A program made the position numbers and the translations under genes. Of a stretch of 64,000 nt of DNA, positions 511 through 24,340 are shown in pieces. The stretch spans positions 1 to 64,000 of the forward strand of contig OX337228.1 of the NCBI GenBank assembly GCA_946965045.2, read 5' to 3'. Positions within the stretch are counted from its first letter, which is position 1, and each line of letters opens with the position of its first letter. Source of the stretch: Epithemia pelagica (lineage: Eukaryota > Protista > Bacillariophyta). Under the pieces are notes generated by a model. It worked only from the letters and a program-made list of their open reading frames with translations, had not been told where the DNA came from and did no database searches.

Positions 511-572
511 GTTTTCAGGTGAAGATGTTGGGCCAATTGAGGTTTTCAGGTGAAGATGTTGGGCGCGAAGGG
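511..572. repeat. 31-bp tandem duplication (GGGCCAA[A/T]TGAGGTTTTCAGGTGAAGATGTT) upstream of paralogue-2 genes; the telomere is attached inside it
   Basis: Intact form at 2037-2098; the first unit is cut at 510/511 here. Confidence 0.9.
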
Positions 573-869
573 GCACGCAGGCGAGCTTTTTGCGCCAAAG
601 AATGGGGGAACAACTAAGAGTGCGGTAATGGTTGGTAATGAGTGAAATTAAGGACTCATATTGAATATGAGTGCTTAGAAATTAGACTTGAGCGGGGCAT
701 AGACATTCTGTGCTCATCTGCACAAGGGGCAGTGCTCTTTTGCAACAAAAGGCATATATATCAGTGCTCATATGCACAGATACTATAGCCCCTTGTGCTC
801 ATATGCACACGTTCAAATCCTACGGTGTCTAGAACTAAAGACACCCAAAAAAGGCAAATATCCTTAGGG

Positions 870-1042
870 CTGTTCTAGTGGGCTGTTCTGCAGTGGGACA
901 GCAGGCTGTTCTGCAGTGGGACAGGGCACTTCTGCAGTGGGACAGAGGGCGGTTCTGCAGTGGGACAAGTGGGATGGGGGCTGTTCTGCAGTGGGACGCT
1001 AGAGTCTACGTAGGCCCACGGACAGGCACTTTCTCCTTAGGG
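870..1042 (+). repeat. End type M3 fragment: (GGGCTGTTCTGCAGTGGGACA)-like minisatellite, then TCTACGTAG, then CCTTAGGG
   Basis: Near-identical to 21276-21455 downstream of the helicase; also at 6266-6438, 11662-11834 and 17057-17229. Confidence 0.9.
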
Positions 1043-1227
1043 CACAGGTAAATTCCTGGCTCAATCGCAACGGGGGTTATGATAAATTGCAGCTCATCTG
1101 CAAAATGAGCATAACAAATTTGCTCATATGCAACAAAGCACTGTAGGATATACTGCTCATATGCACACGTTCAAATCCTACGGTCTCTAGTACTAAAACA
1201 TGCCAAAAAAAGGAAAAATACTTAGGG
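1043..1227 (+). repeat. End type M1c fragment (TGCTCATATGCA repeats, ends ACTTAGGG)
   Basis: Aligns by eye with the M1b end at 5090-5256 and the M1a end at about 2230-2407; one copy per array unit. Confidence 0.85.
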
Positions 1228-1398
1228 ATGAGGGGCTGTGCAAAGGTGGGATGAGGGGCTGTGCGAAGGTGGGATGAGGGGCTGTGCGAAGGCGGGATGA
1301 GGGCTGTGCGAAGGCGGGATGAAGGGGAATAGTAGGAGGGGAGGGTGGGAAGCCAGGATCTACATAGCTCTACGTAGAGACCTAGTTTATCCTTAGGG
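1228..1398 (+). repeat. End type M2 fragment: 22-23-bp GTGGGATGAGGGGCTGTGCGAAG minisatellite, then TCTACGTAG, then CCTTAGGG
   Basis: Near-identical to 24119-24340 and similar to 23419-23523; one copy per array unit. Confidence 0.9.
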
Positions 1399-1915
1399 TG
1401 ACCGCTCTCTTTGTTTTCAAGATTGGATCCTCTTGGGAATATTTCATACTGACAGCAGTCATAGATACCAGCCTCCCACAAGAAGTGACCTGCAATTGTT
1501 CCCTCTCAGGCCCAATGGCTCCACAGGAGTTAGGTGAGGAGAGATGACGCATAACATTGCTGAGTCTTGTCCAGCCAACAAGACACCTGCAGGAATATTC
1601 AAGAACAGACCTCCCCGTGAAGAAGTTTTTTGCAGTACGAGGGTCTTCTTGCAAAATTTGCTCAAGGGACTGTTTATTTGCAACAAGGAGTCGGTTGTCA
1701 GTTGCTGAGACACAGACTCCATGTTGATTTAGATGCCGCTGCATGGACCAAAGACTTTCACTAAATGATTTCTTGCATATGCCGCATCCCATACCAAAGG
1801 GTGTCACAATTGTAGCATCTAAACATGACAAGCCAATGCCCTGATCGGAACGGATCTTCTTCACAGGCCGTCTCCGGGATGGAGATGGCGTTCCAGGCCC
1901 ATTGTTGGTAGCCAT
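1382..1915 (-). pseudogene. 3'-truncated Zn-finger N-terminal fragment, paralogue 2a
   Basis: MATNNGPGTPSP... with CGICKK..SMQRHLNQH and CRC..RHL; homologous to the N-terminus of the 768-aa ORF; cut at the CCTTAGGG junction 1391-1398. Confidence 0.8.
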
Positions 1916-2074
1916 TGCTGGTTTCTTCGTGTGCATGGAACAGAGGAAGAGACATAACCAGCCGACTCTCAAGCAAAAGCAAGGATGGGCCTCTTTGCAA
2001 GAGTCATAATTCATGAAACAACAATGATCTTTTGTTGGGCCAAATGAGGTTTTCAGGTGAAGATGTTGGGCCAA

Positions 2075-2407
2075 TTGAGGTTTTCAGGTGAAGATGTTGG
2101 GCGCGAAGGGGCACGCAGGCGAGCTTTTTGCGCCAAAGAATGGGGGAACAACTAAGAGTGCGGTAATGGTTGGTAATGAGTGAAATTAAGGACTCATATT
2201 GAATATGAGTGCTTAGAAATTAGACTTGAGCGGGGCATAGACATTCTGTGCTCATCTGCACAAGGGGCAGTGCTCTTTTGCAACAAAAGGCATATATATC
2301 AGTGCTCATATGCACAGATACTATAGCCCCTTGTGCTCATATGCACACGTTCAAATCCTACGGTGTCTAGTACTAAAGACACCCAAAAAAGGCAAATATC
2401 CTTAGGG
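2075..2407 (+). other. 5' flank and end type M1a of the paralogue-2 cassette
   Basis: ACTCATATT-G-AATATGAGT palindrome, four GTGCTC..TGCA motifs, terminal AAATATCCTTAGGG; the same end occurs at 511-869 and in each P2a/P2b cassette. Confidence 0.85.
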
Positions 2408-4605
2408 AAGTCTTCCTTGCGTTGGTAATCAGTTGGGAAACACTTGATTTCTCGAGGGTTGGCGAGAGTCATCTTTTGTTTTCCATCTTCGTTCTTGAAA
2501 ACAGAAAACCTTACGACGTATACATTTTTAATGCCTTCGGCCCAAGAATTGTCTGGCTTTTCAAGATCTGACGGGTGGAAAACAAAAGCCGGGTACAAAA
2601 CTTCAATTGATTCTCGTTCGGCATCGTCGATATCCATGGAAACGTCCGTCTGGTAGAGTTCAATGTTTTGAGAACCGGTTGAGTGCTCAATGGGAGAATA
2701 GCTATGATTCGGGAGAGGTGGGTGACAATCGAGCTTGTTGAGAGGAAAGAGAGGAAGATAAAGAACGTAGAATGCCCAATTATTTCTCACAGGAACAAGG
2801 CAACCAAGAGATTCATGGCGAAGTTCACATAGCACTCGAAAGACCATGTATGCTCGACTCAAGGTCATGCAAAGTTTGTGCTCAATCAAATTTTTACCTT
2901 TGTGGTGAACACTGAACGCTTTTTCACTGTGTGAGTAGTAATACACACAGCCTCCATGCCACCGAACGTCAGAAAACAGGCTACGAGAAATTTCAGTGTA
3001 TCGCATGGACCCCAAACCTGTTCCATGAAATGCCAATTCCAAATAGGAGGCAAGGACATCAATGTCGCAGAGATCATAGTCGTCCTGAAGAACAATATCC
3101 TCTTGGGAGTAATTATTGTGACCCGATGCCAAAGTCATTGTTGTCTTGCCCATAGAACTCCAACACACAAACAGTGGATATCGTCGATTCAGTAGATTCA
3201 CCCAACGATTACCCTTGATCACCTTGCAAAGTGAAGCAACCAACTTGTCAAAGATGATCGGAATGACGTTCGACCATTTCTGAAACTTGAACATAAAACC
3301 ATCAACAAGTATATCGTAGTTGTCTTGAATGGACACTTTCCGTGAAGACGGTGTGAGCGACTCTCTCCACCGCATACGCCGAATCGTACTTGCCAAAAAA
3401 TTGACTGTGATGGAGTTTTGAACATTTTCCACCAGCCGAGAAGCTTTCTCATGGTAGCCCCGTCCCATGAAGTATATCATTGAGCAAATACTGGCCCGAA
3501 GCATGGCCAAAATGGCTGACAGCATTGTCGCAATGTAGGAGGGACTCCAAACAGAAAGTGTCTCTGAACCTTCTTGCCCCCGGACAACTCTCCCCGCGCA
3601 GTAGGTCATGACTGTGGTATGATGCTGAACAGAATCCACTGTTTCTAAACACAGCTTTGCCAGTAAAGAGGGAATATCTCTAGTGAGTGGCAGAAGTTTG
3701 TGGTTGCTTTGACACAGGAACGAGAGCAATTTCTTGAACTCGGGGAGAAGTCTTTTGGGGTACGCAGTGAAGGTGAAAGTAGAAATCGCATTGGGACTTC
3801 TTGCTCCATCAAAGACCAACAGCCTTGATCGGTAATTTGCTGGAACCATCTGGACATGGAGGGCAGCCTGTGCTGTGAGCCAGTTTTCTCCTTGATGGTA
3901 CAACAAATCAAAGAGTGGTTGATTGTCGATGATGTGTTTCAAGTTGATGGAGTCATATAAGAAATGCACTCGTTCCTTGAATGACCTTCCCTTGGGCCTG
4001 GATGGGTAAGGTTCGTCTTGGGCCAAGGGATGGAAAAGGGGTACGAAACACCCCATCATATCGGGGAGTACATGAAGAGTTGCTTGTAGTTGTGTGCTTG
4101 TTTTGAGTGAAGGGGCTTCTTGACAGGAATACTTGATCTGTAATGCCTTGAGGGAAATCATACGGCCACAGGTACTGATTTGTAGCTCCTCTTCTGTAGG
4201 GGAGGGAGCACCGCAGGTACGACCCGAGGACAAATGTCTGTACACATTTTGAAGTTTCAAGCTCCCAACAAGACAATGACATGAATAGCCCTTGACCTTT
4301 TCCCCCGTCATATATTCAGAGACACTTGAAATGTCTTGCATAACACTTTGAAGGAGGGTCATTTGATGTTCTATCAGTGACTGGCTTTCAGAACGTGAGA
4401 CAGACACACCATGGCCATTAAGGTGCCTTTGCATGGACCATAGACTGGTTCCAAACGGTTTCCCACATAGGCGACACCCCATACCAAAGGGGGTCACTAG
4501 CGTGACATCGACAGCCTGTAGTTTGTTCTCTTCCTTTTTTTTCTTCGTTGGTCTCCTCCTTGATGGAGAAGGAGTCCCTGGCCCATTATTAGAGGGGGAA
4601 GCCAT
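2299..4605 (-). CDS. 768-aa chimeric ORF: Zn-finger plus tyrosine-recombinase-like N-terminal part of a TLH-type protein (paralogue 1), fused in frame to a G2 fragment
   Basis: CRLCGKP..SMQRHLNGH and CHC..RHL; LELAFHGTGLGSMRYTEI...VYYYSHSEK. Bases 2408-2767 match the G2 ORF at 18595-18954; the last ~36 codons read through the M1a end. Confidence 0.7.
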   Translation of the reverse strand: MASPSNNGPGTPSPSRRRPTKKKKEENKLQAVDVTLVTPFGMGCRLCGKPFGTSLWSMQRHLNGHGVSVSRSESQSLIEHQMTLLQSVMQDISSVSEYMTGEKVKGYSCHCLVGSLKLQNVYRHLSSGRTCGAPSPTEEELQISTCGRMISLKALQIKYSCQEAPSLKTSTQLQATLHVLPDMMGCFVPLFHPLAQDEPYPSRPKGRSFKERVHFLYDSINLKHIIDNQPLFDLLYHQGENWLTAQAALHVQMVPANYRSRLLVFDGARSPNAISTFTFTAYPKRLLPEFKKLLSFLCQSNHKLLPLTRDIPSLLAKLCLETVDSVQHHTTVMTYCAGRVVRGQEGSETLSVWSPSYIATMLSAILAMLRASICSMIYFMGRGYHEKASRLVENVQNSITVNFLASTIRRMRWRESLTPSSRKVSIQDNYDILVDGFMFKFQKWSNVIPIIFDKLVASLCKVIKGNRWVNLLNRRYPLFVCWSSMGKTTMTLASGHNNYSQEDIVLQDDYDLCDIDVLASYLELAFHGTGLGSMRYTEISRSLFSDVRWHGGCVYYYSHSEKAFSVHHKGKNLIEHKLCMTLSRAYMVFRVLCELRHESLGCLVPVRNNWAFYVLYLPLFPLNKLDCHPPLPNHSYSPIEHSTGSQNIELYQTDVSMDIDDAERESIEVLYPAFVFHPSDLEKPDNSWAEGIKNVYVVRFSVFKNEDGKQKMTLANPREIKCFPTDYQRKEDFPKDICLFWVSLVLDTVGFERVHMSTRGYSICAYEH

Positions 4606-5089
4606 TGTCGATAGAGGTTTTGCTGAGAGTGTTCAAGAGACATCTTTCATCGTTCATCAAAGAAAGGGAGTGATGACCCTTTGCAGAATTGCATTGGGCC
4701 CAATTTACTGAACGAATGATGGGTAGGTACAAAGACCTAGAGGCATAAACTAGAAATGGTCAAAATGGGATTTTGATGAGAACTAGTGATGGGTGGAATG
4801 AGATTTTTCTGTGAAATGCCAGCGTCATTTGGCGGGAAAAAAGATTGTACAAAAAAGTTAGTTGGTCATTTGTGTACAAATATATGTCACTCGTACACAC
4901 ATATTAGCTGGTTTGTTGTAACAAGGAAATTTTGTACAGCAAACCAAAGGAAATTCAATCTTACGTTGATTCTTGTATGTAGAGTAGGGCAAGACAAAAA
5001 CCTAACTGGCAGAGCTCTGAAAAGTATTTGGCCAGTATAGAGCATATTGAATATGACGGCTTTTCGGGAGTGGTCAAAGGGGCATAGAC

Positions 5090-5256
5090 AAGGCCACTGC
5101 TCAATCGCAACAAAAGCATAACAAATTGCAGCTCATCCGCAACAAATCCTTGCTCATATGCAACAGGCACTATAGGATTTTGTGCTCATATGCACACGTT
5201 CAAATTCTACGGTCTCTAGTACTAAAAGCTCCCAAAAAAGTGAAATATCCTTAGGG
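5090..5256 (+). other. End type M1b, upstream of the paralogue-1 gene
   Basis: TGCTCATATGCA repeats, CAAATTCTACGGTCTCTAGTACTAAAA, terminal AAATATCCTTAGGG; last 67 bp identical to 19450-19516. Confidence 0.85.
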
Positions 5257-5773
5257 TGACCGCTCTCTTTGTTTTCAAGATTGGATCCTCTTGGGAATAT
5301 TTCATACTGACAGCAGTCATAGATACCAGCCTCCCACAAGAAGTGACCTGTAATTGTTCCCTCTCAGGCCCAATGGCTCCACAGGAGTTAGGTGAGGAGA
5401 GATGACGCATAACATTGCTGAGTCTTGTCCAACCAACAAGACACCTGCAGGAATATCCAAGAACAGACCTCCCCGTGAAGAAGCTTTTTGCGGTATGAGG
5501 GTTTTCTTGCAAAATTTGCTCAAGGGACTGTTTATTTGCAACAAGGAGTCGGTTGTCAGTTGCTGAGACACAGACTCCATGTTGATTTAGATGCCGCTGC
5601 ATGGACCAAAGACTTTCACCAAATGATTTCTTGCATATGCCACATCCCATACCAAAGGGTGTCACAATTGTAGCATCTAAACATGACAAGCCAATGCCCT
5701 GATCGGAACGGATCTTCTTCACAGGCCGTCTCCGGGATGGAGATGGCGTTCCAGGCCCATTGTTGGTAGCCAT
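5222..5773 (-). pseudogene. 3'-truncated Zn-finger fragment, paralogue 2b
   Basis: A few percent diverged from 2a (e.g. QENPHTAKSF vs QEDPRTAKNF); cut at the same internal site, junction 5249-5256. Confidence 0.8.
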
Positions 5774-6777
5774 TGCTGGTTTCCTCGTGTGCATGGAACA
5801 GAGGAAGAGACATAACCAGCCGACTCTCAAGCAAAAGCAAGGATGGGCCTCTTTGCAAGAGTCATAATTCATGAAACAACAATGATCTTTTGTTGGGCCA
5901 AATGAGGTTTTCAGGTGAAGATGTTGGGCCAATTGAGGTTTTCAGGTGAAGATGTTGGGCGCGAAGGGGCACGCAGGCGAGCTTTTTGCGCCAAAGAATG
6001 GGGGAACAACTAAGAGTGCGGTAATGGTTGGTAATGAGTGAAATTAAGGACTCATATTGAATATGAGTGCTTAGAAATTAGACTTGAGCGGGGCATAGAC
6101 ATTCTGTGCTCATCTGCACAAGGGGCAGTGCTCTTTTGCAACAAAAGGCATATATATCAGTGCTCATATGCACAGATACTATAGCCCCTTGTGCTCATAT
6201 GCACACGTTCAAATCCTACGGTGTCTAGAACTAAAGACACCCAAAAAAGGCAAATATCCTTAGGGCTGTTCTAGTGGGCTGTTCTGCAGTGGGACAGCAG
6301 GCTGTTCTGCAGTGGGACAGGGCACTTCTGCAGTGGGACAGAGGGCGGTTCTGCAGTGGGACAAGTGGGATGGGGGCTGTTCTGCAGTGGGACGCTAGAG
6401 TCTACGTAGGCCCACGGACAGGCACTTTCTCCTTAGGGCACAGGTAAATTCCTGGCTCAATCGCAACGGGGGTTATGATAAATTGCAGCTCATCTGCAAA
6501 ATGAGCATAACAAATTTGCTCATATGCAACAAAGCACTGTAGGATATACTGCTCATATGCACACGTTCAAATCCTACGGTCTCTAGTACTAAAACATGCC
6601 AAAAAAAGGAAAAATACTTAGGGATGAGGGGCTGTGCAAAGGTGGGATGAGGGGCTGTGCGAAGGTGGGATGAGGGGCTGTGCGAAGGCGGGATGAGGGC
6701 TGTGCGAAGGCGGGATGAAGGGGAATAGTAGGAGGGGAGGGTGGGAAGCCAGGATCTACATAGCTCTACGTAGAGAC

Positions 6778-7311
6778 CTAGTTTATCCTTAGGGTGACCG
6801 CTCTCTTTGTTTTCAAGATTGGATCCTCTTGGGAATATTTCATACTGACAGCAGTCATAGATACCAGCCTCCCACAAGAAGTGACCTGCAATTGTTCCCT
6901 CTCAGGCCCAATGGCTCCACAGGAGTTAGGTGAGGAGAGATGACGCATAACATTGCTGAGTCTTGTCCAGCCAACAAGACACCTGCAGGAATATTCAAGA
7001 ACAGACCTCCCCGTGAAGAAGTTTTTTGCGGTACGAGGGTCTTCTTGCAAAATTTGCTCAAGGGACTGTTTATTTGCAACAAGGAGTCGGTTGTCAGTTG
7101 CTGAGACACAGACTCCATGTTGATTTAGATGCCGCTGCATGGACCAAAGACTTTCACTAAATGATTTCTTGCATATGCCGCATCCCATACCAAAGGGTGT
7201 CACAATTGTAGCATCTAAACATGACAAGCCAATGCCCTGATCGGAACGGATCTTCTTCACAGGCCGTCTCCGGGATGGAGATGGCGTTCCAGGCCCATTG
7301 TTGGTAGCCAT
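6778..7311 (-). pseudogene. Paralogue 2a fragment, copy 2
   Basis: Array copy of 1382-1915. Confidence 0.8.
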
Positions 7312-7694
7312 TGCTGGTTTCTTCGTGTGCATGGAACAGAGGAAGAGACATAACCATCCGACTCTCAAGCAAAAGCAAGGATGGGCCTCTTTGCAAGAGT
7401 CATAATTCATGAAACAACAATGATCTTTTGTTGGGCCAAATGAGGTTTTCAGGTGAAGATGTTGGGCCAATTGAGGTTTTCAGGTGAAGATGTTGGGCGC
7501 GAAGGGGCACGCAGGCGAGCTTTTTGCGCCAAAGAATGGGGGAACAACTAAGAGTGCGGTAATGGTTGGTAATGAGTGAAATTAAGGACTCATATTGAAT
7601 ATGAGTGCTTAGAAATTAGACTTGAGCGGGGCATAGACATTCTGTGCTCATCTGCACAAGGGGCAGTGCTCTTTTGCAACAAAAGGCATATATA

Positions 7695-10001
7695 TCAGTG
7701 CTCATATGCACAGATACTATAGCCCCTTGTGCTCATATGCACACGTTCAAATCCTACGGTGTCTAGTACTAAAGACACCCAAAAAAGGCAAATATCCTTA
7801 GGGAAGTCTTCCTTGCGTTGGTAATCAGTTGGGAAACACTTGATTTCTCGAGGGTTGGCGAGAGTCATCTTTTGTTTTCCATCTTCGTTCTTGAAAACAG
7901 AAAACCGTACGACGTATACATTTTTAATGCCTTCGGCCCAAGAATTGTCTGGCTTTTCAAGATCTGACGGGTGGAAAACAAAAGCCGGGTACAAAACTTC
8001 AATTGATTCTCGTTCGGCATCGTCGATATCCATGGAAACGTCCGTCTGGTAGAGTTCAATGTTTTGAGAACCGGTTGAGTGCTCAATGGGAGAATAGCTA
8101 TGATTCGGGAGAGGTGGGTGACAATCGAGCTTGTTGAGAGGAAAGAGAGGAAGATAAAGAACGTAGAATGCCCAATTATTTCTCACAGGAACAAGGCAAC
8201 CAAGAGATTCATGGCGAAGTTCACATAGCACTCGAAAGACCATGTATGCTCGACTCAAGGTCATGCAAAGTTTGTGCTCAATCAAATTTTTACCTTTGTG
8301 GTGAACACTGAACGCTTTTTCACTGTGTGAGTAGTAATACACACAGCCTCCATGCCACCGAACGTCAGAAAACAGGCTACGAGAAATTTCAGTGTATCGC
8401 ATGGACCCCAAACCTGTTCCATGAAATGCCAATTCCAAATAGGAGGCAAGGACATCAATGTCGCAGAGATCATAGTCGTCCTGAAGAACAATATCCTCTT
8501 GGGAGTAATTATTGTGACCCGATGCCAAAGTCATTGTTGTCTTGCCCATAGAACTCCAACACACAAACAGTGGATATCGTCGATTCAGTAGATTCACCCA
8601 ACGATTACCCTTGATCACCTTGCAAAGTGAAGCAACCAACTTGTCAAAGATGATCGGAATGACGTTCGACCATTTCTGAAACTTGAACATAAAACCATCA
8701 ACAAGTATATCGTAGTTGTCTTGAATGGACACTTTCCGTGAAGACGGTGTGAGCGACTCTCTCCACCGCATACGCCGAATCGTACTTGCCAAAAAATTGA
8801 CTGTGATGGAGTTTTGAACATTTTCCACCAGCCGAGAAGCTTTCTCATGGTAGCCCCGTCCCATGAAGTATATCATTGAGCAAATACTGGCCCGAAGCAT
8901 GGCCAAAATGGCTGACAGCATCGTCGCAATGTAGGAGGGACTCCAAACAGAAAGTGTCTCTGAACCTTCTTGCCCCCGGACAACTCTCCCCGCGCAGTAG
9001 GTCATGACTGTGGTATGATGCTGAACAGAATCCACTGTTTCTAAACACAGCTTTGCCAGTAAAGAGGGAATATCTCTAGTGAGTGGCAGAAGTTTGTGGT
9101 TGCTTTGACACAGGAACGAGAGCAATTTCTTGAACTCGGGGAGAAGTCTTTTGGGGTACGCAGTGAAGGTGAAAGTAGAAATCGCATTGGGACTTCTTGC
9201 TCCATCAAAGACCAACAGCCTTGATCGGTAATTTGCTGGAACCATCTGGACATGGAGGGCAGCCTGTGCTGTGAGCCAGTTTTCTCCTTGATGGTACAAC
9301 AAATCAAAGAGTGGTTGATTGTCGATGATGTGTTTCAAGTTGATGGAGTCATATAAGAAATGCACTCGTTCCTTGAATGACCTTCCCTTGGGCCTGGATG
9401 GGTAAGGTTCGTCTTGGGCCAAGGGATGGAAAAGGGGTACGAAACACCCCATCATATCGGGGAGTACATGAAGAGTTGCTTGTAGTTGTGTGCTTGTTTT
9501 GAGTGAAGGGGCTTCTTGACAGGAATACTTGATCTGTAATGCCTTGAGGGAAATCATACGGCCACAGGTACTGATTTGTAGCTCCTCTTCTGTAGGGGAG
9601 GGAGCACCGCAGGTACGACCCGAGGACAAATGTCTGTACACATTTTGAAGTTTCAAGCTCCCAACAAGACAATGACATGAATAGCCCTTGACCTTTTCCC
9701 CCGTCATATATTCAGAGACACTTGAAATGTCTTGCATAACACTTTGAAGGAGGGTCATTTGATGTTCTATCAGTGACTGGCTTTCAGAACGTGAGACAGA
9801 CACACCATGGCCATTAAGGTGCCTTTGCATGGACCATAGACTGGTTCCAAACGGTTTCCCACATAGGCGACACCCCATACCAAAGGGGGTCACTAGCGTG
9901 ACATCGACAGCCTGTAGTTTGTTCTCTTCCTTTTTTTTCTTCGTTGGTCTCCTCCTTGATGGAGAAGGAGTCCCTGGCCCATTATTAGAGGGGGAAGCCA
10001 T
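7695..10001 (-). CDS. 768-aa chimeric ORF, copy 2
   Basis: Translation identical to 2299-4605. Confidence 0.7.
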   Translation of the reverse strand: MASPSNNGPGTPSPSRRRPTKKKKEENKLQAVDVTLVTPFGMGCRLCGKPFGTSLWSMQRHLNGHGVSVSRSESQSLIEHQMTLLQSVMQDISSVSEYMTGEKVKGYSCHCLVGSLKLQNVYRHLSSGRTCGAPSPTEEELQISTCGRMISLKALQIKYSCQEAPSLKTSTQLQATLHVLPDMMGCFVPLFHPLAQDEPYPSRPKGRSFKERVHFLYDSINLKHIIDNQPLFDLLYHQGENWLTAQAALHVQMVPANYRSRLLVFDGARSPNAISTFTFTAYPKRLLPEFKKLLSFLCQSNHKLLPLTRDIPSLLAKLCLETVDSVQHHTTVMTYCAGRVVRGQEGSETLSVWSPSYIATMLSAILAMLRASICSMIYFMGRGYHEKASRLVENVQNSITVNFLASTIRRMRWRESLTPSSRKVSIQDNYDILVDGFMFKFQKWSNVIPIIFDKLVASLCKVIKGNRWVNLLNRRYPLFVCWSSMGKTTMTLASGHNNYSQEDIVLQDDYDLCDIDVLASYLELAFHGTGLGSMRYTEISRSLFSDVRWHGGCVYYYSHSEKAFSVHHKGKNLIEHKLCMTLSRAYMVFRVLCELRHESLGCLVPVRNNWAFYVLYLPLFPLNKLDCHPPLPNHSYSPIEHSTGSQNIELYQTDVSMDIDDAERESIEVLYPAFVFHPSDLEKPDNSWAEGIKNVYVVRFSVFKNEDGKQKMTLANPREIKCFPTDYQRKEDFPKDICLFWVSLVLDTVGFERVHMSTRGYSICAYEH

Positions 10002-10617
10002 TGTCGATAGAGGTTTTGCTGAGAGTGTTCAAGAGACATCTTTCATCGTTCATCAAAGAAAGGGAGTGATGACCCTTTGCAGAATTGCATTGGGCCCAAT
10101 TTACTGAACGAATGATGGGTAGGTACAAAGACCTAGAGGCATAAACTAGAAATGGTCAAAATGGGATTTTGATGAGAACTAGTGATGGGTGGAATGAGAT
10201 TTTTCTGTGAAATGCCAGCGTCATTTGGCGGGAAAAAAGATTGTACAAAAAAGTTAGTTGGTCATTTGTGTACAAATATATGTCACTCGTACACACATAT
10301 TAGCTGGTTTGTTGTAACAAGGAAATTTTGTACAGCAAACCAAAGGAAATTCAATCTTACGTTGATTCTTGTATGTAGAGTAGGGCAAGACAAAAACCTA
10401 ACTGGCAGAGCTCTGAAAAGTATTTGGCCAGTATAGAGCATATTGAATATGACGGCTTTTCGGGAGTGGTCAAAGGGGCATAGACAAGGCCACTGCTCAA
10501 TCGCAACAAAAGCATAACAAATTGCAGCTCATCCGCAACAAATCCTTGCTCATATGCAACAGGCACTATAGGATTTTGTGCTCATATGCACACGTTCAAA
10601 TTCTACGGTCTCTAGTA

Positions 10618-11169
10618 CTAAAAGCTCCCAAAAAAGTGAAATATCCTTAGGGTGACCGCTCTCTTTGTTTTCAAGATTGGATCCTCTTGGGAATATTTCA
10701 TACTGACAGCAGTCATAGATACCAGCCTCCCACAAGAAGTGACCTGTAATTGTTCCCTCTCAGGCCCAATGGCTCCACAGGAGTTAGGTGAGGAGAGATG
10801 ACGCATAACATTGCTGAGTCTTGTCCAACCAACAAGACACCTGCAGGAATATCCAAGAACAGACCTCCCCGTGAAGAAGCTTTTTGCGGTATGAGGGTTT
10901 TCTTGCAAAATTTGCTCAAGGGACTGTTTATTTGCAACAAGGAGTCGGTTGTCAGTTGCTGAGACACAGACTCCATGTTGATTTAGATGCCGCTGCATGG
11001 ACCAAAGACTTTCACCAAATGATTTCTTGCATATGCCGCATCCCATACCAAAGGGTGTCACAATTGTAGCATCTAAACATGACAAGCCAATGCCCTGATC
11101 GGAACGGATCTTCTTCACAGGCCGTCTCCGGGATGGAGATGGCGTTCCAGGCCCATTGTTGGTAGCCAT
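10618..11169 (-). pseudogene. Paralogue 2b fragment, copy 2
   Basis: Array copy of 5222-5773. Confidence 0.8.
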
Positions 11170-12707: not shown

Positions 12708-13090
12708 TGCTGGTTTCTTCGTGTGCATGGAACAGAGGAAGAGACATAACCAGCCGACTCTCAAGCAAAAGCAAGGATGGGCCTCTTTGCAAGAGTCATA
12801 ATTCATGAAACAACAATGATCTTTTGTTGGGCCAAATGAGGTTTTCAGGTGAAGATGTTGGGCCAATTGAGGTTTTCAGGTGAAGATGTTGGGCGCGAAG
12901 GGGCACGCAGGCGAGCTTTTTGCGCCAAAGAATGGGGGAACAACTAAGAGTGCGGTAATGGTTGGTAATGAGTGAAATTAAGGACTCATATTGAATATGA
13001 GTGCTTAGAAATTAGACTTGAGCGGGGCATAGACATTCTGTGCTCATCTGCACAAGGGGCAGTGCTCTTTTGCAACAAAAGGCATATATA

Positions 13091-15396: not shown

Positions 15397-16012
15397 TGTC
15401 GATAGAGGTTTTGCTGAGAGTGTTCAAGAGACATCTTTCATCGTTCATCAAAGAAAGGGAGTGATGACCCTTTGCAGAATTGCATTGGGCCCAATTTACT
15501 GAACGAATGATGGGTAGGTACAAAGACCTAGAGGCATAAACTAGAAATGGTCAAAATGGGATTTTGATGAGAACTAGTGATGGGTGGAATGAGATTTTTC
15601 TGTGAAATGCCAGCGTCATTTGGCGGGAAAAAAGATTGTACAAAAAAGTTAGTTGGTCATTTGTGTACAAATATATGTCACTCGTACACACATATTAGCT
15701 GGTTTGTTGTAACAAGGAAATTTTGTACAGCAAACCAAAGGAAATTCAATCTTACGTTGATTCTTGTATGTAGAGTAGGGCAAGACAAAAACCTAACTGG
15801 CAGAGCTCTGAAAAGTATTTGGCCAGTATAGAGCATATTGAATATGACGGCTTTTCGGGAGTGGTCAAAGGGGCATAGACAAGGCCACTGCTCAATCGCA
15901 ACAAAAGCATAACAAATTGCAGCTCATCCGCAACAAATCCTTGCTCATATGCAACAGGCACTATAGGATTTTGTGCTCATATGCACACGTTCAAATTCTA
16001 CGGTCTCTAGTA

Positions 16013-16564
16013 CTAAAAGCTCCCAAAAAAGTGAAATATCCTTAGGGTGACCGCTCTCTTTGTTTTCAAGATTGGATCCTCTTGGGAATATTTCATACTG
16101 ACAGCAGTCATAGATACCAGCCTCCCACAAGAAGTGACCTGTAATTGTTCCCTCTCAGGCCCAATGGCTCCACAGGAGTTAGGTGAGGAGAGATGACGCA
16201 TAACATTGCTGAGTCTTGTCCAACCAACAAGACACCTGCAGGAATATCCAAGAACAGACCTCCCCGTGAAGAAGCTTTTTGCGGTATGAGGGTTTTCTTG
16301 CAAAATTTGCTCAAGGGACTGTTTATTTGCAACAAGGAGTCGGTTGTCAGTTGCTGAGACACAGACTCCATGTTGATTTAGATGCCGCTGCATGGACCAA
16401 AGACTTTCACCAAATGATTTCTTGCATATGCCACATCCCATACCAAAGGGTGTCACAATTGTAGCATCTAAACATGACAAGCCAATGCCCTGATCGGAAC
16501 GGATCTTCTTCACAGGCCGTCTCCGGGATGGAGATGGCGTTCCAGGCCCATTGTTGGTAGCCAT
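16013..16564 (-). pseudogene. Paralogue 2b fragment, copy 3
   Basis: Array copy of 5222-5773. Confidence 0.8.
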
Positions 16565-17568
16565 TGCTGGTTTCCTCGTGTGCATGGAACAGAGGAAGAG
16601 ACATAACCAGCCGACTCTCAAGCAAAAGCAAGGATGGGCCTCTTTGCAAGAGTCATAATTCATGAAACAACAATGATCTTTTGTTGGGCCAAATGAGGTT
16701 TTCAGGTGAAGATGTTGGGCCAATTGAGGTTTTCAGGTGAAGATGTTGGGCGCGAAGGGGCACGCAGGCGAGCTTTTTGCGCCAAAGAATGGGGGAACAA
16801 CTAAGAGTGCGGTAATGGTTGGTAATGAGTGAAATTAAGGACTCATATTGAATATGAGTGCTTAGAAATTAGACTTGAGCGGGGCATAGACATTCTGTGC
16901 TCATCTGCACAAGGGGCAGTGCTCTTTTGCAACAAAAGGCATATATATCAGTGCTCATATGCACAGATACTATAGCCCCTTGTGCTCATATGCACACGTT
17001 CAAATCCTACGGTGTCTAGAACTAAAGACACCCAAAAAAGGCAAATATCCTTAGGGCTGTTCTAGTGGGCTGTTCTGCAGTGGGACAGCAGGCTGTTCTG
17101 CAGTGGGACAGGGCACTTCTGCAGTGGGACAGAGGGCGGTTCTGCAGTGGGACAAGTGGGATGGGGGCTGTTCTGCAGTGGGACGCTAGAGTCTACGTAG
17201 GCCCACGGACAGGCACTTTCTCCTTAGGGCACAGGTAAATTCCTGGCTCAATCGCAACGGGGGTTATGATAAATTGCAGCTCATCTGCAAAATGAGCATA
17301 ACAAATTTGCTCATATGCAACAAAGCACTGTAGGATATACTGCTCATATGCACACGTTCAAATCCTACGGTCTCTAGTACTAAAACATGCCAAAAAAAGG
17401 AAAAATACTTAGGGATGAGGGGCTGTGCAAAGGTGGGATGAGGGGCTGTGCGAAGGTGGGATGAGGGGCTGTGCGAAGGCGGGATGAGGGCTGTGCGAAG
17501 GCGGGATGAAGGGGAATAGTAGGAGGGGAGGGTGGGAAGCCAGGATCTACATAGCTCTACGTAGAGAC

Positions 17569-18102
17569 CTAGTTTATCCTTAGGGTGACCGCTCTCTTTG
17601 TTTTCAAGATTGGATCCTCTTGGGAATATTTCATACTGACAGCAGTCATAGATACCAGCCTCCCACAAGAAGTGACCTGCAATTGTTCCCTCTCAGGCCC
17701 AATGGCTCCACAGGAGTTAGGTGAGGAGAGATGACGCATAACATTGCTGAGTCTTGTCCAGCCAACAAGACACCTGCAGGAATATTCAAGAACAGACCTC
17801 CCCGTGAAGAAGTTTTTTGCGGTACGAGGGTCTTCTTGCAAAATTTGCTCAAGGGACTGTTTATTTGCAACAAGGAGTCGGTTGTCAGTTGCTGAGACAC
17901 AGACTCCATGTTGATTTAGATGCCGCTGCATGGACCAAAGACTTTCACTAAATGATTTCTTGCATATGCCGCATCCCATACCAAAGGGTGTCACAATTGT
18001 AGCATCTAAACATGACAAGCCAATGCCCTGATCGGAACGGATCTTCTTCACAGGCCGTCTCCGGGATGGAGATGGCGTTCCAGGCCCATTGTTGGTAGCC
18101 AT
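17569..18102 (-). pseudogene. Paralogue 2a fragment, copy 4
   Basis: Array copy of 1382-1915. Confidence 0.8.
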
Positions 18103-18485
18103 TGCTGGTTTCTTCGTGTGCATGGAACAGAGGAAGAGACATAACCAGCCGACTCTCAAGCAAAAGCAAGGATGGGCCTCTTTGCAAGAGTCATAATTCA
18201 TGAAACAACAATGATCTTTTGTTGGGCCAAATGAGGTTTTCAGGTGAAGATGTTGGGCCAATTGAGGTTTTCAGGTGAAGATGTTGGGCGCGAAGGGGCA
18301 CGCAGGCGAGCTTTTTGCGCCAAAGAATGGGGGAACAACTAAGAGTGCGGTAATGGTTGGTAATGAGTGAAATTAAGGACTCATATTGAATATGAGTGCT
18401 TAGAAATTAGACTTGAGCGGGGCATAGACATTCTGTGCTCATCTGCACAAGGGGCAGTGCTCTTTTGCAACAAAAGGCATATATA

Positions 18486-19154
18486 TCAGTGCTCATATGC
18501 ACAGATACTATAGCCCCTTGTGCTCATATGCACACGTTCAAATCCTACGGTGTCTAGTACTAAAGACACCCAAAAAAGGCAAATATCCTTAGGGAAGTCT
18601 TCCTTGCGTTGGTAATCAGTTGGGAAACACTTGATTTCTCGAGGGTTGGCGAGAGTCATCTTTTGTTTTCCATCTTCGTTCTTGAAAACAGAAAACCGTA
18701 CGACGTATACATTTTTAATGCCTTCGGCCCAAGAATTGTCTGGCTTTTCAAGATCTGACGGGTGGAAAACAAAAGCCGGGTACAAAACTTCAATTGATTC
18801 TCGTTCGGCATCGTCGATATCCATGGAAACGTCCGTCTGGTAGAGTTCAATGTTTTGAGAACCGGTTGAGTGCTCAATGGGAGAATAGCTATGATTCGGG
18901 AGAGGTGGGTGACAATCGAGCTTCTTGAGAGGAAAGAGAGGAAGATAAAGAACGATGGATTGCTTGCTTCCTTGTCGGTGAATCAACCTGCCGATGGTCG
19001 TCGTACCATCGTCTTGATTGGGAATTCGGGCATGGACAAAAGTTCCGAGACGAAAGTAATCGTCAAGTTGCTCGACGTAGATGGCGCCACGGGCAGAAGT
19101 CATGATGGTGTCGGAAATCAATTCGGGAGATGAATGTGGGGTTTGTTGGGACAA
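18486..19154 (-). pseudogene. G2: 3'-truncated gene of unknown function, possibly BAH-like
   Basis: Open from ATG 19154 and cut at CCTTAGGG 18587-18594; YFRLGTFVHAR..TIGRLI and ELYQTD..PAFVFHP pattern. Confidence 0.55.
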
Positions 19155-19516
19155 CAGAACGACTAGAGATTATTGGAACGATCAAGGGCGTCCATTGTTA
19201 TCAAGAATCGGTCCGATTGGCATTAGGAGTTGCCTCCGAGTTGGTCAGTACCGGTGGAGAAAAAATGAGGGAAAACGACAATTCTGCGTCAAAATGCTTT
19301 AAGTAAGATATGTCGTGGATTTTTTCTAATTATTGGTATTTTCCGTTGAAAATAGCGCGCGAGTACGGTTTTGTAAGCGCGGGCCGTGATTTTTGGTCTT
19401 AGGGGGAGCGTGAATGTGAGCAAAATTGGTATGGAAAGGCTCCTAATGTATGCACACGTTCAAATTCTACGGTCTCTAGTACTAAAAGCTCCCAAAAAAG
19501 TGAAATATCCTTAGGG

Positions 19517-21052
19517 AGGAAATTTTCCAGATGTGATGTTCTGTACGGTGGACTCGATCGGGAGTCTTTTCAAATTTCACTGTCTCTTTGTGCATGAACT
19601 GTCATCAAAACACAAAATTGCCCGATTTTATCTCGATGAAGTGCATACACTATTCAGTGAACAGTTCAGAATGGCATATGACAACATACGGAACATCGGG
19701 CAATTTGGGGTGCCCCTCACCGCACTCTCTGGAACTCTTCCCGGGCCTCTGGTAGAAAGTCTTTATGAATACTTGGGTCTTCGTCTCGATCGATTGATTA
19801 CGGGGAGAACTCTATTGGGAAACTTCCCTAAGGGTTTCCAAATTGAGACAGTCCAATCATCACAACTAGTCCATGACACAGTGATCTGCACCAAAGGCAA
19901 AGTAACCACAGAGTCATCAACCTGTGTACATGTGATTGTGGCAACTAAACAGCAGTGTACCGACATTGCACAGTGCCTCAAGCAATCAACCAACCTTTCT
20001 GTTGACAAGCAATCAACCAACCTTTCTGTTGAAGCTCTGTCATCGGATGAGCCTTCAAGTAGACAAGAAGCAGTTGCCCAGCAGTGGAGATCTGGGGACA
20101 TCCGAATCTTGGTCTCAACAAAATGTGCACTATGTGGTAATGAGAATCACAATTGTCGACATGTGATTGTATGCGGCATGATATACAGTCTAATGAACAT
20201 CGTCCAAGCTGTGGGACGCCTACGGCCAAGTCAGAGAAAGCCTGATGGGAGTGTCACATTGTTGTATAGCACAGGACACATGGCAAGGGATCTCCAAGAA
20301 GACCAGACATTGAGGCTACTTGAAGACAAAGGATTACTGACTGGATCTGAATCAAGAGCTCACCTTGAGTTGGTGTTTGGCTCAAGTTCAATAGCAAAGT
20401 GGCTGGCCGAAAGATCATGCCGAGTACAAGGTCTGTCAAGACAATTCGGATTGGAGGTGGATTGCTGTGGTGTGTGTGATTGGTGTGTTGAACAATCAAA
20501 TCAAAGTGGACACTCCAGAGTCAGGGAGAGGGTCAGGAATGAAGACATTGATGCGGAAAGGCTGAATCCTATCTGGCAAGGCTTACAAGAGAATGCATTG
20601 TGTGCAAGGAGGCAGGATGCAATGGTGAAAGCTGTCTGCCCTATGGAGCATGCTTCAACTGTGGTCAGCCAGGTCACCAGAGAGGACAGTGCCGAGTCAA
20701 TTTCCAAACAGTCTTGAGCAACAAGGCCTGCTTTTACTGCTTTGATGTGTTCAGCAGGCGCGGCTACAAGCAACACCATCCCAGTACATGTCCTTTACAA
20801 CGAAGATTGAAGCGGCTGATGATCGATGTATATGAGTCAAGGAAGACCAATGGACAATCCAGAGCAATGACTGATTTCATGTCCAAAGTAACATGCGACA
20901 GCCATTCGTTTCATGCTTTTCTGTGTCAGAGTGTTGAACAACGGATGGGCATGACAGTGACACAGACACCTCATGCAACCACAGCAGCCAGACCATCTGT
21001 GGCACGACCAGCTCTACCAAGGAATCCATATGCAAAGAAAGCATTCAAGTAG
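19517..21052 (+). pseudogene. 5'-truncated RecQ-like (SF2) telomere-linked-type helicase with Zn-binding region and CCHC knuckle
   Basis: LDEVH (motif II), ALSGT (III), ILVST..G (V), QAVGRLR (VI), CR..CCGVCDWC, CFNCGQPGHQRGQC. Walker A is missing (cut at junction 19509-19516). One-base frameshift near 20557; 27-bp in-frame duplication (KQSTNLSV x2). Confidence 0.88.
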
Positions 21053-21275
21053 ATAGTATTAAGTTAGTAGTTACAATGTGTCGGGGTAAAGACCATCATC
21101 AAAAGGCCCATAGAAGAGTCATCTCACAAAAAATCTAATCACGTCCCACAAAAAATATTAGGCCCAAAGAATGGTCATTTCACACAAAAATCTGACCCAG
21201 TCACACTTGTAGTGACGGGAAATGAAACTAGTCGAGCTACGACTAACTAATAAGCATGGGCATAGGTATGACTAG

Positions 21276-21455
21276 AATAGGGCTGTTCTAGTGGGCTGTT
21301 CTGCAGTGGGACAGCAGGCTGTTCTGCAGTGGGACAGGGCACTTCTGCAGTGGGACAGAGGGCGATTCTGCAGTGGGACAAGTGGGATGGGGGCTGTTCT
21401 GCAGTGGGACGCTAGAGTCTACGTAGGCCTACGGACAGGCACTTTCTCCTTAGGG
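21276..21455 (+). other. End type M3 in longer context, 3' of the helicase gene
   Basis: Follows the helicase 3' flank; G-rich minisatellite, TCTACGTAG, terminal CTCCTTAGGG. Confidence 0.85.
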
Positions 21456-23418
21456 TTTCTCACCAAGCAAGGCAGATCCTGACATTTGGATGAGAAAAGC
21501 ACCTGGGGAGGATTGCTACGAATACATCGCCGTATATGTGGATGACTTAGCCATCATAGCTACTGACCCTGGAAACATTTGCAAAGGCTTCAAGGAAAAG
21601 TACAACTTCAAGCTTAAGGGAGATGGACCTATTGACTATCACCTGGGATGCCGGTACATCAAGGACCCTGACGGAACCCTAGTCTCTGATCCACGCCGAT
21701 ACATTAGCAAAATGATGGACACCTTCGAACGTATCTTCAAAGAGAAACCCAAGAAGGCTAAGACCCCTCTCATTGCTTGTGATCACCCGGAATTGGACGA
21801 CACCGAACTCCTTGATGAAGAAGGTACACAGCACTTCCAGACCTTGATTGGACAGCTTCAGTGGGTGATTACAATTGGTCGCTTTGATGTTTTTACTGCT
21901 ACGATGACCCTTTCCAGGTTCCGCGCAGCTCCAAGACAGGGACATCTCAACAGAGCTAAACGCATCTATGGATACCTTTTCAATCTTTCTGATGGTGCAA
22001 TCAGATTCCAAATCGGAGAGCCCGATTTCTCAAGCATTCCAAGTCAAGACTTTGATTGGAGTCGTACGGTCTATTCAGATGCCAAGGAATACATCCCTCA
22101 TGATTGCCCAGAACCACTTGGACGATATGTGACGACAACGCACTATGTTGATGCTAACCTTATGCACGACATGATCACAGGAAAGTCTGTAACAAACATC
22201 TCTCGAATGGGACACCAATTGATTGGTACAGCAAACGACAGAGCACTGTGGAAACGGCAACATATGGATCAGAATTTGTGGCAGCAAGGACAGCAGTCGA
22301 CCAAATCACTGAATTACGGCATTCACTTCGTTACCTTGGAGTACCAATCAGGAATCGCAGTTATCTGTTTGGAGACAATCGATCTGTGGTTGTTAACGCA
22401 ACAATGCCTCATTCTATCTTGTCCAAGAGACATCATCTCCTTTCATATCACCGGGTACGAGAAGCAATAGCAGTGCAATACGTTGCATTCTATTGGAAGG
22501 ATGGGAAGACCAACCCTGCCGACATCCTCAGCAAGCATTGGGAGTTTGCAACTATTTGGCCTCTACTCAAGCCCCAATTGTTTTGGAGAGGAGAAGTTCA
22601 AGATCTCTACGAATCCAGCGATGACAAGGCTGAACCAACGAGCTGTGGGGAGTAGTAGAACTCTCACCAAAAATCATCGGTTAGGTTCGGCACGTCATCG
22701 GTTAGTCGAGTCCCGTGGCTTCAAACATCACCTTCATCACCTACATCCACACTACATACCTAGCTTCGCGCTAGCTCAACATATATTTCGGTCGCATATA
22801 CCAAAAAGTGAGAACAGATTGACAAACGTGCTATCAAGAATCAACTTTGGTCTTGATATCCCATCAACGGACGATCATCCGTTGAACATCCGAGCCTGAC
22901 CTATGCCCTAAGCGTGCGCGCCCAAATTCGTTAAGACGCGCGCAAGAACTATCCGAGCGTGGCGACCATGTATCCGACCCAACGGTCTAAGTACACAAGG
23001 CACGAATCACGATCACGCGAGACCATATCATCGTTCCCACTATTTCAAGATTACAAACAAGGACGCGCCAACAAAACTACATATACCAACTTTAGCCAAG
23101 AATCGTTGAGGATGTATATGATATACAAGCACATATACATGTTATATACCTCACATACATCAACTCCAACCATTCCAGTCCTATCACCGCCAAGAACCTA
23201 TTTCACACGATTGACAACAAGAATGGAAACCTCACACACCAAACCTAGTAGTAAGCTCACAATCATTAACATTACCATATCATCACGTCTTCAGTGTCCT
23301 GACTATCCCTACGATAGAGCCCTTGGGTTTCCTTTGTTCTCTGACCCGTGGAGAACCTTGGTATCAGTTGGTAATCGATTGTGGCTCTTCTAGAGCGTGT
23401 ACTGACGGAATTCTACTA
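21456..23418 (+). mobile_element. 5'-truncated Ty1/copia (CoDi-like) LTR retrotransposon: RT C-terminal part, RNase H, PPT and 3' LTR
   Basis: ADPDIWMRK..YIAVYVDDL, YVDANLMHD, ETATYGSEFVAAR, NPADILSKHW; frameshift near 22195; PPT GGGGAG at 22647-22652. Confidence 0.93.
22653..23418 (+). repeat. Putative copia 3' LTR, 766 bp, ends TAGTAGAA...TTCTACTA
   Basis: Starts immediately after the PPT; 8-bp terminal inverted repeat; M2 minisatellite resumes right after 23418. Confidence 0.75.
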
Positions 23419-23523
23419 GGATGAGGGCTGTGCGAAGGTGGGATGACGGGGCATAGTAGGAGGGGAGGGTGGGAAGCCAGGATCTACAGAGCTCTACGTA
23501 GCAAACCTAGTTTATCCTTAGGG

Positions 23524-23954
23524 GTATCACTTGTTTCCACTCCAGGGATCAACCTGCAACAGACTGTTGTCACACAAGAAGTTCTTGTTGCACTTGAACC
23601 ATTGCACACTCCTCCACTATGGCGACAGTGATCTGCAAGTGCTCTTTGTGTCTTGAAAATTTCTCCACAAACGCAGCAATGACCCATCACAGTCTCCAGG
23701 ATACTTGATGACCTGGTTTCTGTAGTGTTTAATTGTTGCATGTGGCTCTTACACTGTGCCAACATGTCTTTTAAGGAAACCCTGGTCACCCACTGCCGGT
23801 GTTTCTTCAAATGCCTTTGCAAGGACGATGTTGAAAAACCAATTGGAACTTTACAAACCAAACAAAAAATACCAAAATGAGACACCCTGATGCCATGGTG
23901 ATTGTCAAAGGCATACCCGGTCAATGGGTCAAACAACGGGGAAGAATCTGACAT
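23524..23954 (-). pseudogene. 3'-truncated Zn-finger fragment, divergent paralogue 3
   Basis: FGIFCLVCKVPIGFSTSSLQRHLKKH and CCVCGEIF..ADHCRH are co-linear with paralogues 1 and 2; cut at junction 23516-23523. Confidence 0.75.
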
Positions 23955-24118
23955 GGTCAATGGAGGAACTGTGCAAGGTACCAATGACAGCGAGACGAGA
24001 GATAGATAGATGGGGTGGAGTGAGGTCATTTGGCCCATACAAATTCATATGGGCCAAATGACCTTGGCAGTCCAAGGGAAAAGGCAACAATAATTACTAT
24101 AGGTTTTGATTGTACCTT

Positions 24119-24340
24119 GTGGGATGAGGGGCTGTGCGAAGGTGGGATGAGGGGCTGTGCAAAGGTGGGATGAGGGGCTGTGCGAAGGTGGGATGAGGGG
24201 CTGTGCGAAGGTGGGATGAGGGGCTGTGCGAAGGCGGGATGAGGGCTGTGCGAAGGCGGGATGAAGGGGAATAGTAGGAGGGGAGGGTGGGAAGCCAGGA
24301 TCTACATAGCTCCACGTAGAGACCTAGTTTATCCTTAGGG
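24119..24340 (+). repeat. End type M2 in longer context: about 6-7 units of a 23-bp G-rich minisatellite, then terminal TATCCTTAGGG
   Basis: Units start at 24119, 24142, 24165, 24188, 24211 and 24234; lies upstream of the paralogue-3 start. Confidence 0.9.

Follow-up and report, generated by a model that had tools for sequence, protein, structure and literature searches.

A one-directional stack of truncated telomere-linked helicase elements at a diatom chromosome end, probably built by site-specific joining of element tips

Why does a single telomere repeat recur, in inverted polarity, within the subtelomere of a diatom chromosome? We address this question for the first 64,000 nucleotides of contig OX337228.1 of Epithemia pelagica (assembly GCA_946965045.2; hereafter, the window). 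The telomere at the start of the + strand marks the window as a left chromosome end. Positions 511 to 24340 are occupied by a one-directional stack of cut-short copies (stumps) of telomere-linked elements, whose gene encodes a helicase fused to a recombinase-like domain. Each stump starts with an internal cut at its left and ends at its right in a natural element tip with a single TTAGGG (Table 1), and this tip is attached at a (T/A)GG(G) site of the neighbouring stump on the proximal side. The stack looks like the product of an apparently undescribed, probably recombinase-driven, way to re-cap chromosome ends.

The motif CTTAGGG was found 30 times in the window against 3.9 expected, and 28 of the 30 are on the + strand, all within 863-24340. 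TTAGGG on the + strand likewise has 28 sites, all within 864-24340, and none was found in 24341-64000, the remaining 40 kb of the window. Beyond the telomere, CCCTAA on the + strand is limited to two strays at 19826 and 22906. The original prediction had listed 27 junctions at these sites and had pointed out that the telomere reads CCCTAA and the junctions TTAGGG on the same strand. The coordinates are exact and the contrast in polarity is real. However, only ten of the 27 joints are independent (869, 1042, 1227, 1398, 2407, 5256, 19516, 21455, 23523 and 24340), because the other 17 are copies from a recent tandem amplification of 5396 bp. The array contains 23 of the 28 TTAGGG sites, as copies of six joints per unit; the last four joints of the list lie outside this count. 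A possible 28th junction had been placed at 19398. CTTAGGG is indeed present there, with its TTAGGG at 19399, but its left flank has no second copy in any sequence examined, and the site may be a chance occurrence.

The left flanks of the joints form three conserved tip families, named M, B and D. The right flanks are internal cuts and not natural ends, because longer, uninterrupted source copies exist. Such sources were found for at least seven joints: those of stumps B and D in the window (at 21278 and 24144), that of stump E in two other contig ends of the same organism (L001 and L002), that of stump C in a third (L003) and, from other runs, contigs that span the cuts in the helicase and copia stumps. 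Thus the predicted pattern of a conserved left end and a cut right sequence holds, as does the example given for it (aaTAGGG/ctgttc at 21276 versus ccTTAGGG/ctgttc at 862; the slash marks the cut), and the possibility that the right flanks are natural termini falls away.

Joints were pooled from the window and L001-L003 (10 + 5 + 4 + 9), which gave 28 robust independent joints; site 19399 of the window and one unconfirmed candidate at L001 1220 were left out. A second telomere repeat was found at none of the 28 joints, the tips were never eroded, and the tip was on the chromosome-body side at every joint. The source carries GGG directly before the retained sequence in all 13 cases. The chance probability of GGG at the cut is about 2e-21 when calculated for 13 of 14 sources, the fourteenth being an imperfect paralogue source with GG. 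The base before GGG in the source is A or T in 13 of 13 (P about 0.003), namely T in ten and A in three. We therefore write the target as W/GGG, in which W is A or T. The original prediction had offered two readings and had proposed counting residual repeats and examining the source loci as a way to separate them. This comparison, made on the window and L001-L003, gave a single TTAGGG at 28 of 28 joints and a fixed cut at W/GGG in 13 of 13 sources, and it supports the first reading, site-specific joining. The target had been described as TAGGG-like; a fixed, short GGG target was confirmed, but the preceding base is better given as W, with T commoner than A.

The second reading was that telomeres eroded to the last repeat invade TAGGG-like microhomologies and copy to the ends, and that the resulting patchwork is later inverted or captured with a chromosome arm. 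Short overlaps such as TAGGG (21276 versus 862) fit this reading, and subtelomeric helicase elements are known to amplify by recombination upon telomere failure, as Y' elements do in yeast. However, it predicts variable residual repeats, and there are none in 28 joints. It predicts joints in telomere polarity, whereas the polarity is inverted at all four ends examined. It also predicts that A is preferred before GGG, whereas T dominates. With neither variable repeats nor variable microhomology at the joints, we consider eroded telomeres with arm capture highly improbable. Since the inverted polarity recurs at every end examined, it is part of the process and not a one-off rearrangement.

Could the joints be an artefact of assembly in a repeat-rich chromosome end? 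They were judged from assemblies and not from single long reads, which speaks for this explanation. However, a second, contig-level assembly contains all ten joint types. Its contig ctg1325l (ENA ERZ21939226) is colinear with window positions 7910-25226 at 99.977%. This contig begins within the array. The chromosome end must therefore be on the left, regardless of the telomere repeats, and the same starting point fully accounts for the difference in array copy number between the assemblies. Short-read contigs of the same organism (X1 and X2, from a slightly different strain or data set), which break at tips and are blind to long-range structure, both carry joints 2407/2408 and 1227/1228, and X2 alone carries 1398/1399. 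The other ends obey the same rule with different breakpoints. An artefact is thus the explanation to which we give the least credence. We had also considered L001-L003 as independent genomes; this was rejected, as the 99.977% match shows the same organism, and they are other chromosome ends.

Two joints have only GG in the product, L002 13281 and L002 9510. At L002 13281, the product reads CCTAAGG and the acceptor source, at window 20135-20138, reads tGGt. These GG-only products indicate that the G's come from the acceptor, and that the exchange occurs directly after TTA in the tip and directly after W in the target.

This precision bears on the rival that host repair made the joints. Free linear copies, or other chromosome ends, with the exact terminus ...CCTTAGGG-3' would be joined to resected broken ends by microhomology end joining or GGG-primed template switching, and the recombinase-like domain would serve another purpose, such as element release or replication. 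The shared sequence is just three bases, or four to five in three cases; the stack is at a chromosome end that was demonstrably broken and healed; and a duplication boundary with 1-nt homology in the array shows that non-homologous repair acts here. However, the tips are never nibbled and carry no extra repeats at 28 joints. T is favoured over A before GGG (10 versus 3) although T does not extend the homology, and this excess argues against simple microhomology extension. Annealing at the extreme 3' end would keep three G's, unlike the two GG-only products. Host repair would still require a molecule with an exact ...TTAGGG end. We regard it as unlikely, while giving it real weight. The joining enzyme would be either the element's own recombinase-like domain or host repair.

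What kind of element do the tips belong to? The M tip is located 650 bp upstream of the start of a large gene, which reads away from the tip. The D tip is upstream of a diverged zinc-finger N-terminus of the same gene class, and the B tip follows the helicase half of a further diverged copy. All three, whether on the 5' side of the gene (M and D) or on its 3' side (B), end in the same outward-pointing 8-mer, (C/A)CTTAGGG. Because the same outward motif marks both gene sides, a whole element would read CCCTAAGG...CCTTAGGG. As a composite of different families, it would resemble a miniature chromosome with one telomere unit per end, and its length is estimated at about 5 kb from a leader of about 650 bp, a gene of about 4 kb and a tail of about 400 bp. 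The B and D tips each consist of a 23-bp minisatellite, the palindrome CTACGTAG and then tCCTTAGGG. The M tips contain direct repeats of TGCTCATMTGCA, with 38 copies in the window against 0.02 expected, every copy being on the + strand and within M tips. These repeats are candidate protein-binding sites.

The occurrence of tips from both gene sides, in inverted polarity, bears on two further explanations. Polar head-to-tail stacks of truncated copies with telomere units between them are typical of telomere-specific retrotransposons, so tip-ending transcripts might have been reverse-transcribed onto the end. However, the elements are without a reverse transcriptase (a copia fragment, present as a passenger, supplies the only one), the stumps keep a 5'-side or a 3'-side tip, unlike the uniform 5' truncation of retroelements, and the repeat polarity is opposite to that expected from G-overhang priming. 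RNA-mediated stacking is thus no more probable, in our judgement, than invasion by eroded telomeres. Alternatively, breakage-fusion-bridge cycles may have acted, in which a broken end fuses to a critically short telomere, the dicentric breaks nearby, the cycle repeats and telomerase finally heals the end. These cycles would give inverted polarity without a special enzyme, and a final healing is visible at 510/511. However, ten successive breaks would be needed within 0.17-2.9 kb of the fusion point, the partner telomeres would always have to be eroded to exactly one repeat, and GGG would be required at each crossover. Nor do the cycles account for 5'-side and 3'-side tips of one element class as partners. 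We consider them very unlikely.

The longest copy of the protein retrieved, P0002, was found in L001 and has 1264 residues. The next joint truncates its reading frame, which ends at a stop codon (TAA) provided by the CCCTAA unit of this joint. In P0002, a C2H2-like zinc finger and an unassigned stretch of about 500 residues are combined with DEAD and Helicase_C domains and a Cys-rich tail. The helicase belongs to superfamily 2; a RecQ-specific model was matched weakly, by the relative P0021 only (E value 4e-9, far below the cut-off). Copies of the helicase open reading frame (ORF) occur in the window and at the three other contig ends. An exhaustive profile-free search with the N-terminal 720 residues gave 218 relatives. 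In 34 relatives (23-49% identity), the motifs GxGxGSxRxxE, YYxxxSxK, QxRHxWTS and AExSGHSxxTHxxxY are kept. Among them R535, K562 and R634 (P0002 numbering) are invariant, and H668 and Y677 are at least 90% conserved. Their conserved Arg, Lys, Arg, His and Tyr, the last of them nine residues past the His, correspond to those of the tyrosine recombinases and the type IB topoisomerases.

An AlphaFold model of the recombinase-like domain (mean predicted local distance difference test score, 84.8) matched Cre, Tre, XerH, XerA and poxvirus or bacterial topoisomerase IB before all else. Among the best 25 Foldseek matches, 24 were Cre/Tre or XerH and one was a bacterial topoisomerase IB. The Z scores from VIA-align were 10.5 for XerH, 10.3 for Cre and 9.0 for bacterial topoisomerase IB, with the catalytic domain aligned over 157-175 residues (root-mean-square deviation, 3.3-4.2). 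An NCBIfam search with the N-terminal domain returned nothing. The domain is placed as tyrosine-recombinase/topoisomerase-IB-like by its predicted fold and its motifs only. Relatives in other organisms (L006-L008) are on single 6-kb metagenome contigs that end in repeats and have no recognisable tips.

Based on these results, we think it somewhat probable, on balance, that the polar stack grew by site-specific joining of element tips, probably by the element's own recombinase. The chromosome end would grow outward by the addition of new copies. An incoming element, whose far tip carries or acquires a telomere, would join through its near tip to W/GGG at the chromosome end. The acceptor could be whatever sits there, whether an older element, a copia insertion or unique DNA, and all DNA distal to it would be replaced. 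The recombinase-like domain would cut the tip just after CCTTA and the target just after W, and the tip would be joined to the 5'-OH GGG end, with the three matching bases as a homology check. Tyrosine recombinases test the homology of the bases next to the cut during strand swapping. As the near tip mirrors the far one, each internal joint would be a single telomere unit inverted with respect to the telomere of the arm. The inverted polarity thus needs no arm capture. The new telomere would be carried or seeded by the far tip, which is already a telomere unit of the right polarity. No intact gene copy was found in the window (the 768-codon frame of the array is chimeric and the helicase stump frameshifted). 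Since all stumps of the window are dead, active copies elsewhere would have to act in trans.

Several points weigh against this reading. The preference for A or T before GGG was noticed post hoc, and the evidence for the exchange point comes from two joints, with an uninterrupted source for one. A three-base identity would also fit microhomology-mediated joining by the host. Conservative exchange by a recombinase brings no gain in copy number of its own, so a replicative or free-element step must be assumed. In the protein, the first His of the classical HxxR box is not conserved, and the catalytic set resembles the topoisomerase-IB pentad. Residues 1-750 of P0002 gave no Pfam match at E values up to 1, and a profile of the 34 relatives gave no match to PDB chains at E values up to 10; the presumed recombinase activity is deduced from a modelled fold and motifs. 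In the sequence examined, neither a single-piece full-length element with both tips nor a far tip running directly into telomere was found, and the two-tip model is pieced together from different families. Finally, the link between telomere and array and the copy number of 3.4 are known from the assembly only.

The features of the window are listed in Table 1.

Table 1. Coordinates of the telomere, array, stumps and repeats in the window. A slash within a sequence marks a cut or junction.
Feature	Position	Strand	Description
Terminal telomere array	1-510	+	(CCCTAA)85, one slipped unit near 300
Telomere/array junction	510/511	.	...ccctaac/gttttcagg; source ...aaatgag/gttttcagg at 2048/2049 and 5906/5907
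Tandem array	511-18954	+	Period 5396 bp, about 3.4 units, 99.9% identity
Sub-terminal direct repeats (12-mers)	e.g. 711-807	+	TGCTCATMTGCA; two or three in each M-type tip, with constant spacing to the end
Stump B (173 bp)	870-1042	+	23-bp repeats and B-type tip; uninterrupted source 21278-21455 (99%)
Stump C (185 bp)	1043-1227	-	M-type variant tip ending ACTTAGGG; source in L003, agAGGG/cacagg
Stump D (171 bp)	1228-1398	-	23-bp repeats and D-type tip; source 24167-24341 (99%), cut gtGGG/atgagg
Stump E (1009 bp)	1399-2407	-	M-type tip; cut TTTGGG/tgaccgc; uninterrupted gene in L001 and L002
768-codon ORF of array unit	2299-4605	-	Chimera; exits the P0002 frame past about residue 612 at the duplication boundary
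Stump E' (1009 bp)	5257-6265; copies 10653-11661, 16048-17056	-	M-type tip; cut TTTGGG/tgaccgc
Stump G2	13560-16047; copies 2768-5256, 8164-10652	-	M-type tip, 650-bp leader, first ~612 codons
Stump P1 (922 bp)	18595-19516	-	M-type tip 19449-19516; contains the doubtful CTTAGGG 19398-19404
Helicase stump, second diverged family	19517-21455	+	3' half of helicase gene, 3' tail, 23-bp repeats, B-type tip
Copia-bearing stump	21456-23523	+	D-type tip 23419-23523; copia-type retrotransposon inserted at 21456-23418
Oldest stump (817 bp)	23524-24340	-	D-type tip; joined at 24340/24341 to chromosome-unique DNA

Followed from its proximal to its distal end, the stack suggests the following history. A D stump would have been joined to unique DNA at 24340, followed by the D stump with copia, the helicase stump and P1, then by stumps E, D, C, B and E', and then by the G2 stump. 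A 5396-bp block of six stumps was next tandemly amplified. Last, a break within an E'-type copy seems to have been followed by direct addition of a telomere at 510/511 without a tip.

On the - strand, the oldest stump codes for a zinc-finger N-terminus that belongs to a third family and shows 29% identity to residues 37-150 of P0002 (E value 6e-10). The copia-bearing stump is cut inside the reverse-transcriptase gene of copia (RVT_2 match), and its source reads ...atatGGG/tttctc. Contigs near-identical to this copia fragment were present in a marine sediment metagenome run (X4); therefore, the transposon or the species occurs in environmental data. The helicase stump is 30% identical to residues 837-1205 of P0002 and frameshifted, its gene reads towards the tip, and its source copy in run X3 reads ...gtGGG/aggaaat. 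Stumps E and E' share their cut site but have different joint partners, and the E' copy at 511-869 is cut by the telomere. The G2 stump matches the long copy in L001 at 99.4% identity, and its gene part comprises the zinc finger and a portion of the recombinase-like domain.

Behind the M-type tip of P1 lies an orphan ORF (18597-19154, - strand, about 186 codons). It matched no Pfam family and had no relative among 5.8 billion proteins except its own copy, and it could be a non-helicase passenger or a decayed leader. The homology of P1 to other M tips breaks off at 19448/19449, 68 bp from the end, without a telomere unit. This is a second type of breakpoint within a tip and is unexplained.

The amplification fused the orphan-gene stump P1 to the G2 stump. 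The unit boundary (2767/2768 = 8163/8164 = 13559/13560; right edge, 18954/18955) has a 1-nt microhomology and no telomere unit, and it is not a TTAGGG joint. It reflects a non-homologous duplication rather than an element joint. The 768-codon frame that spans it is not a functional gene, as it has neither the helicase nor three residues of the catalytic set (second Arg, His and Tyr). The boundary keeps this chimeric frame open, by chance or otherwise. At 510/511, the telomere adjoins the interior of a 31-bp repeat in an M-type stump; an element tip is missing, and the homology does not exceed 1 nt. A break seems to have been healed there by direct addition of a new telomere.

Typical genes start past about 24.3 kb. 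One of them encodes an EF-hand Na/Ca exchanger, for which diatoms provide the nearest protein clusters. Just within the first chromosome-unique DNA, at 24919-25386, there is a near-perfect palindrome with arms of about 230 bp, which are 84-91% complementary, and a centre near 25148.

Some further observations concern the tips and repeats. The 31-bp repeats about 300 bp from the M tips (2033-2102 and copies) contain GTTGGGCC. In L001 and L002, the matching repeats of a further tip family, N, contain GTTAGGGCC in the opposite orientation relative to the tip, and telomere-like motifs occur in the L001 repeats at 3335-3372 and 6753-6795. The M tip has a tRNA-like look (GTTCAAATCC). This idea was dropped, as a search for structured RNA found no tRNA and no Rfam family in 500-26000. 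Metagenome contigs with relatives of the gene (clusters of P0007, P0011 and P0019) are mostly about 3-7 kb, a size to be expected of assemblies that are interrupted wherever a repeat unit of about 5-6 kb ends. In another organism (L009, ENA ERZ25039600), a short TTAGGG-like tract is located at 15343-15391, internally in a 99.5-kb contig and about 740 bp past a homologous gene of 1533 residues. The perfect palindrome TTAGGGTTAACCCTAA at its end is a telomere joint of the head-to-head type.

To our knowledge, helicase genes beside telomeres in yeasts and fungi have been known for decades, with their position and spread unexplained. We tentatively propose, while still inclining to doubt, that telomere-linked helicase genes, and by extension the fungal TLH and Y' genes, are cargo of self-mobilising DNA elements. 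Such elements would graft onto chromosome ends at W/GGG with a telomere seed, by means of a recombinase-like enzyme fused to a helicase, and displace the existing tip. With a joint that is precise, polar and one-ended, and a conserved cutting-and-rejoining domain in the protein that carries the helicase, the helicase puzzle becomes a testable mechanism. If the proposal is true, this would be a DNA-based, enzyme-driven replacement of chromosome ends, distinct from telomerase, retrotransposition and homologous recombination. It would also add a new class of mobile DNA and a new route for re-capping broken chromosome ends. The stack also shows that a lone inverted telomere unit within a subtelomere is not necessarily a relic of fusion or inversion.

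How do these elements compare with known systems? A full-text literature search found no description of telomere-linked helicases with a recombinase domain or a precise joint, and none of such element stacks in diatom subtelomeres. A paper on Magnaporthe chromosome ends mentions only telomere-like motifs in upstream repeats. A protein-language search placed the N-terminal domain nearest to uncharacterised Ascomycota proteins, some of them with DEAD and Helicase_C domains, which we take as a lead only. With the fungal TLH genes and the Y' elements of Saccharomyces cerevisiae, the present elements share multi-copy helicase units beside telomeres at many ends, sometimes in tandem. Between Y' units lie telomere tracts in telomere polarity whose length varies, and the units spread by homologous recombination. 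Unlike Y', the elements described here have a single inverted unit, a fixed W/GGG crossover and one-ended stumps.

Polar truncated stacks at chromosome ends, with telomere units between copies, are shared with MoTeR/FoTeR, the Penelope-like Athena/Terminons and HeT-A/TART. These telomere-specific retroelements are based on reverse transcriptase, are truncated only at the 5' side and have repeats in telomere polarity, and they can substitute for or destabilise telomeres. In contrast, the present elements have no reverse transcriptase, have tips of both gene sides and carry a single inverted repeat. Crypton transposons are likewise DNA elements with a tyrosine recombinase, no long terminal repeats and joining at very short shared sequences. 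Cryptons, which occur in fungi, stramenopiles and animals, have no fused helicase, are dispersed and keep both ends per insertion. Here, a helicase is fused, each copy keeps one tip in one polarity, copies are confined to chromosome ends, and there is no Pfam integrase match.

Telomere resolvases gave VIA-align Z scores well under those of Cre and Xer (TelA, 5.5; ResT, 3.8), and neither the palindrome CCTTAGGGCCCTAAGG, which two joined tips would form, nor a hairpin was seen. With topoisomerase IB of the poxvirus type, the recombinase-like domain shares a conserved Arg-Lys-Arg-His-Tyr set with the Tyr nine residues past the His, and the fold matches variola and bacterial topoisomerase IB with Z scores of 8-9 (about 10 for Cre and XerH). 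The tip also has CCTT beside the exchange point, and the three bases beside the cut must match. Unlike topoisomerase IB, the domain shows no sequence-level membership in that family, its exchange would occur after CCTTA and not after CCCTT, and it is fused to a helicase.

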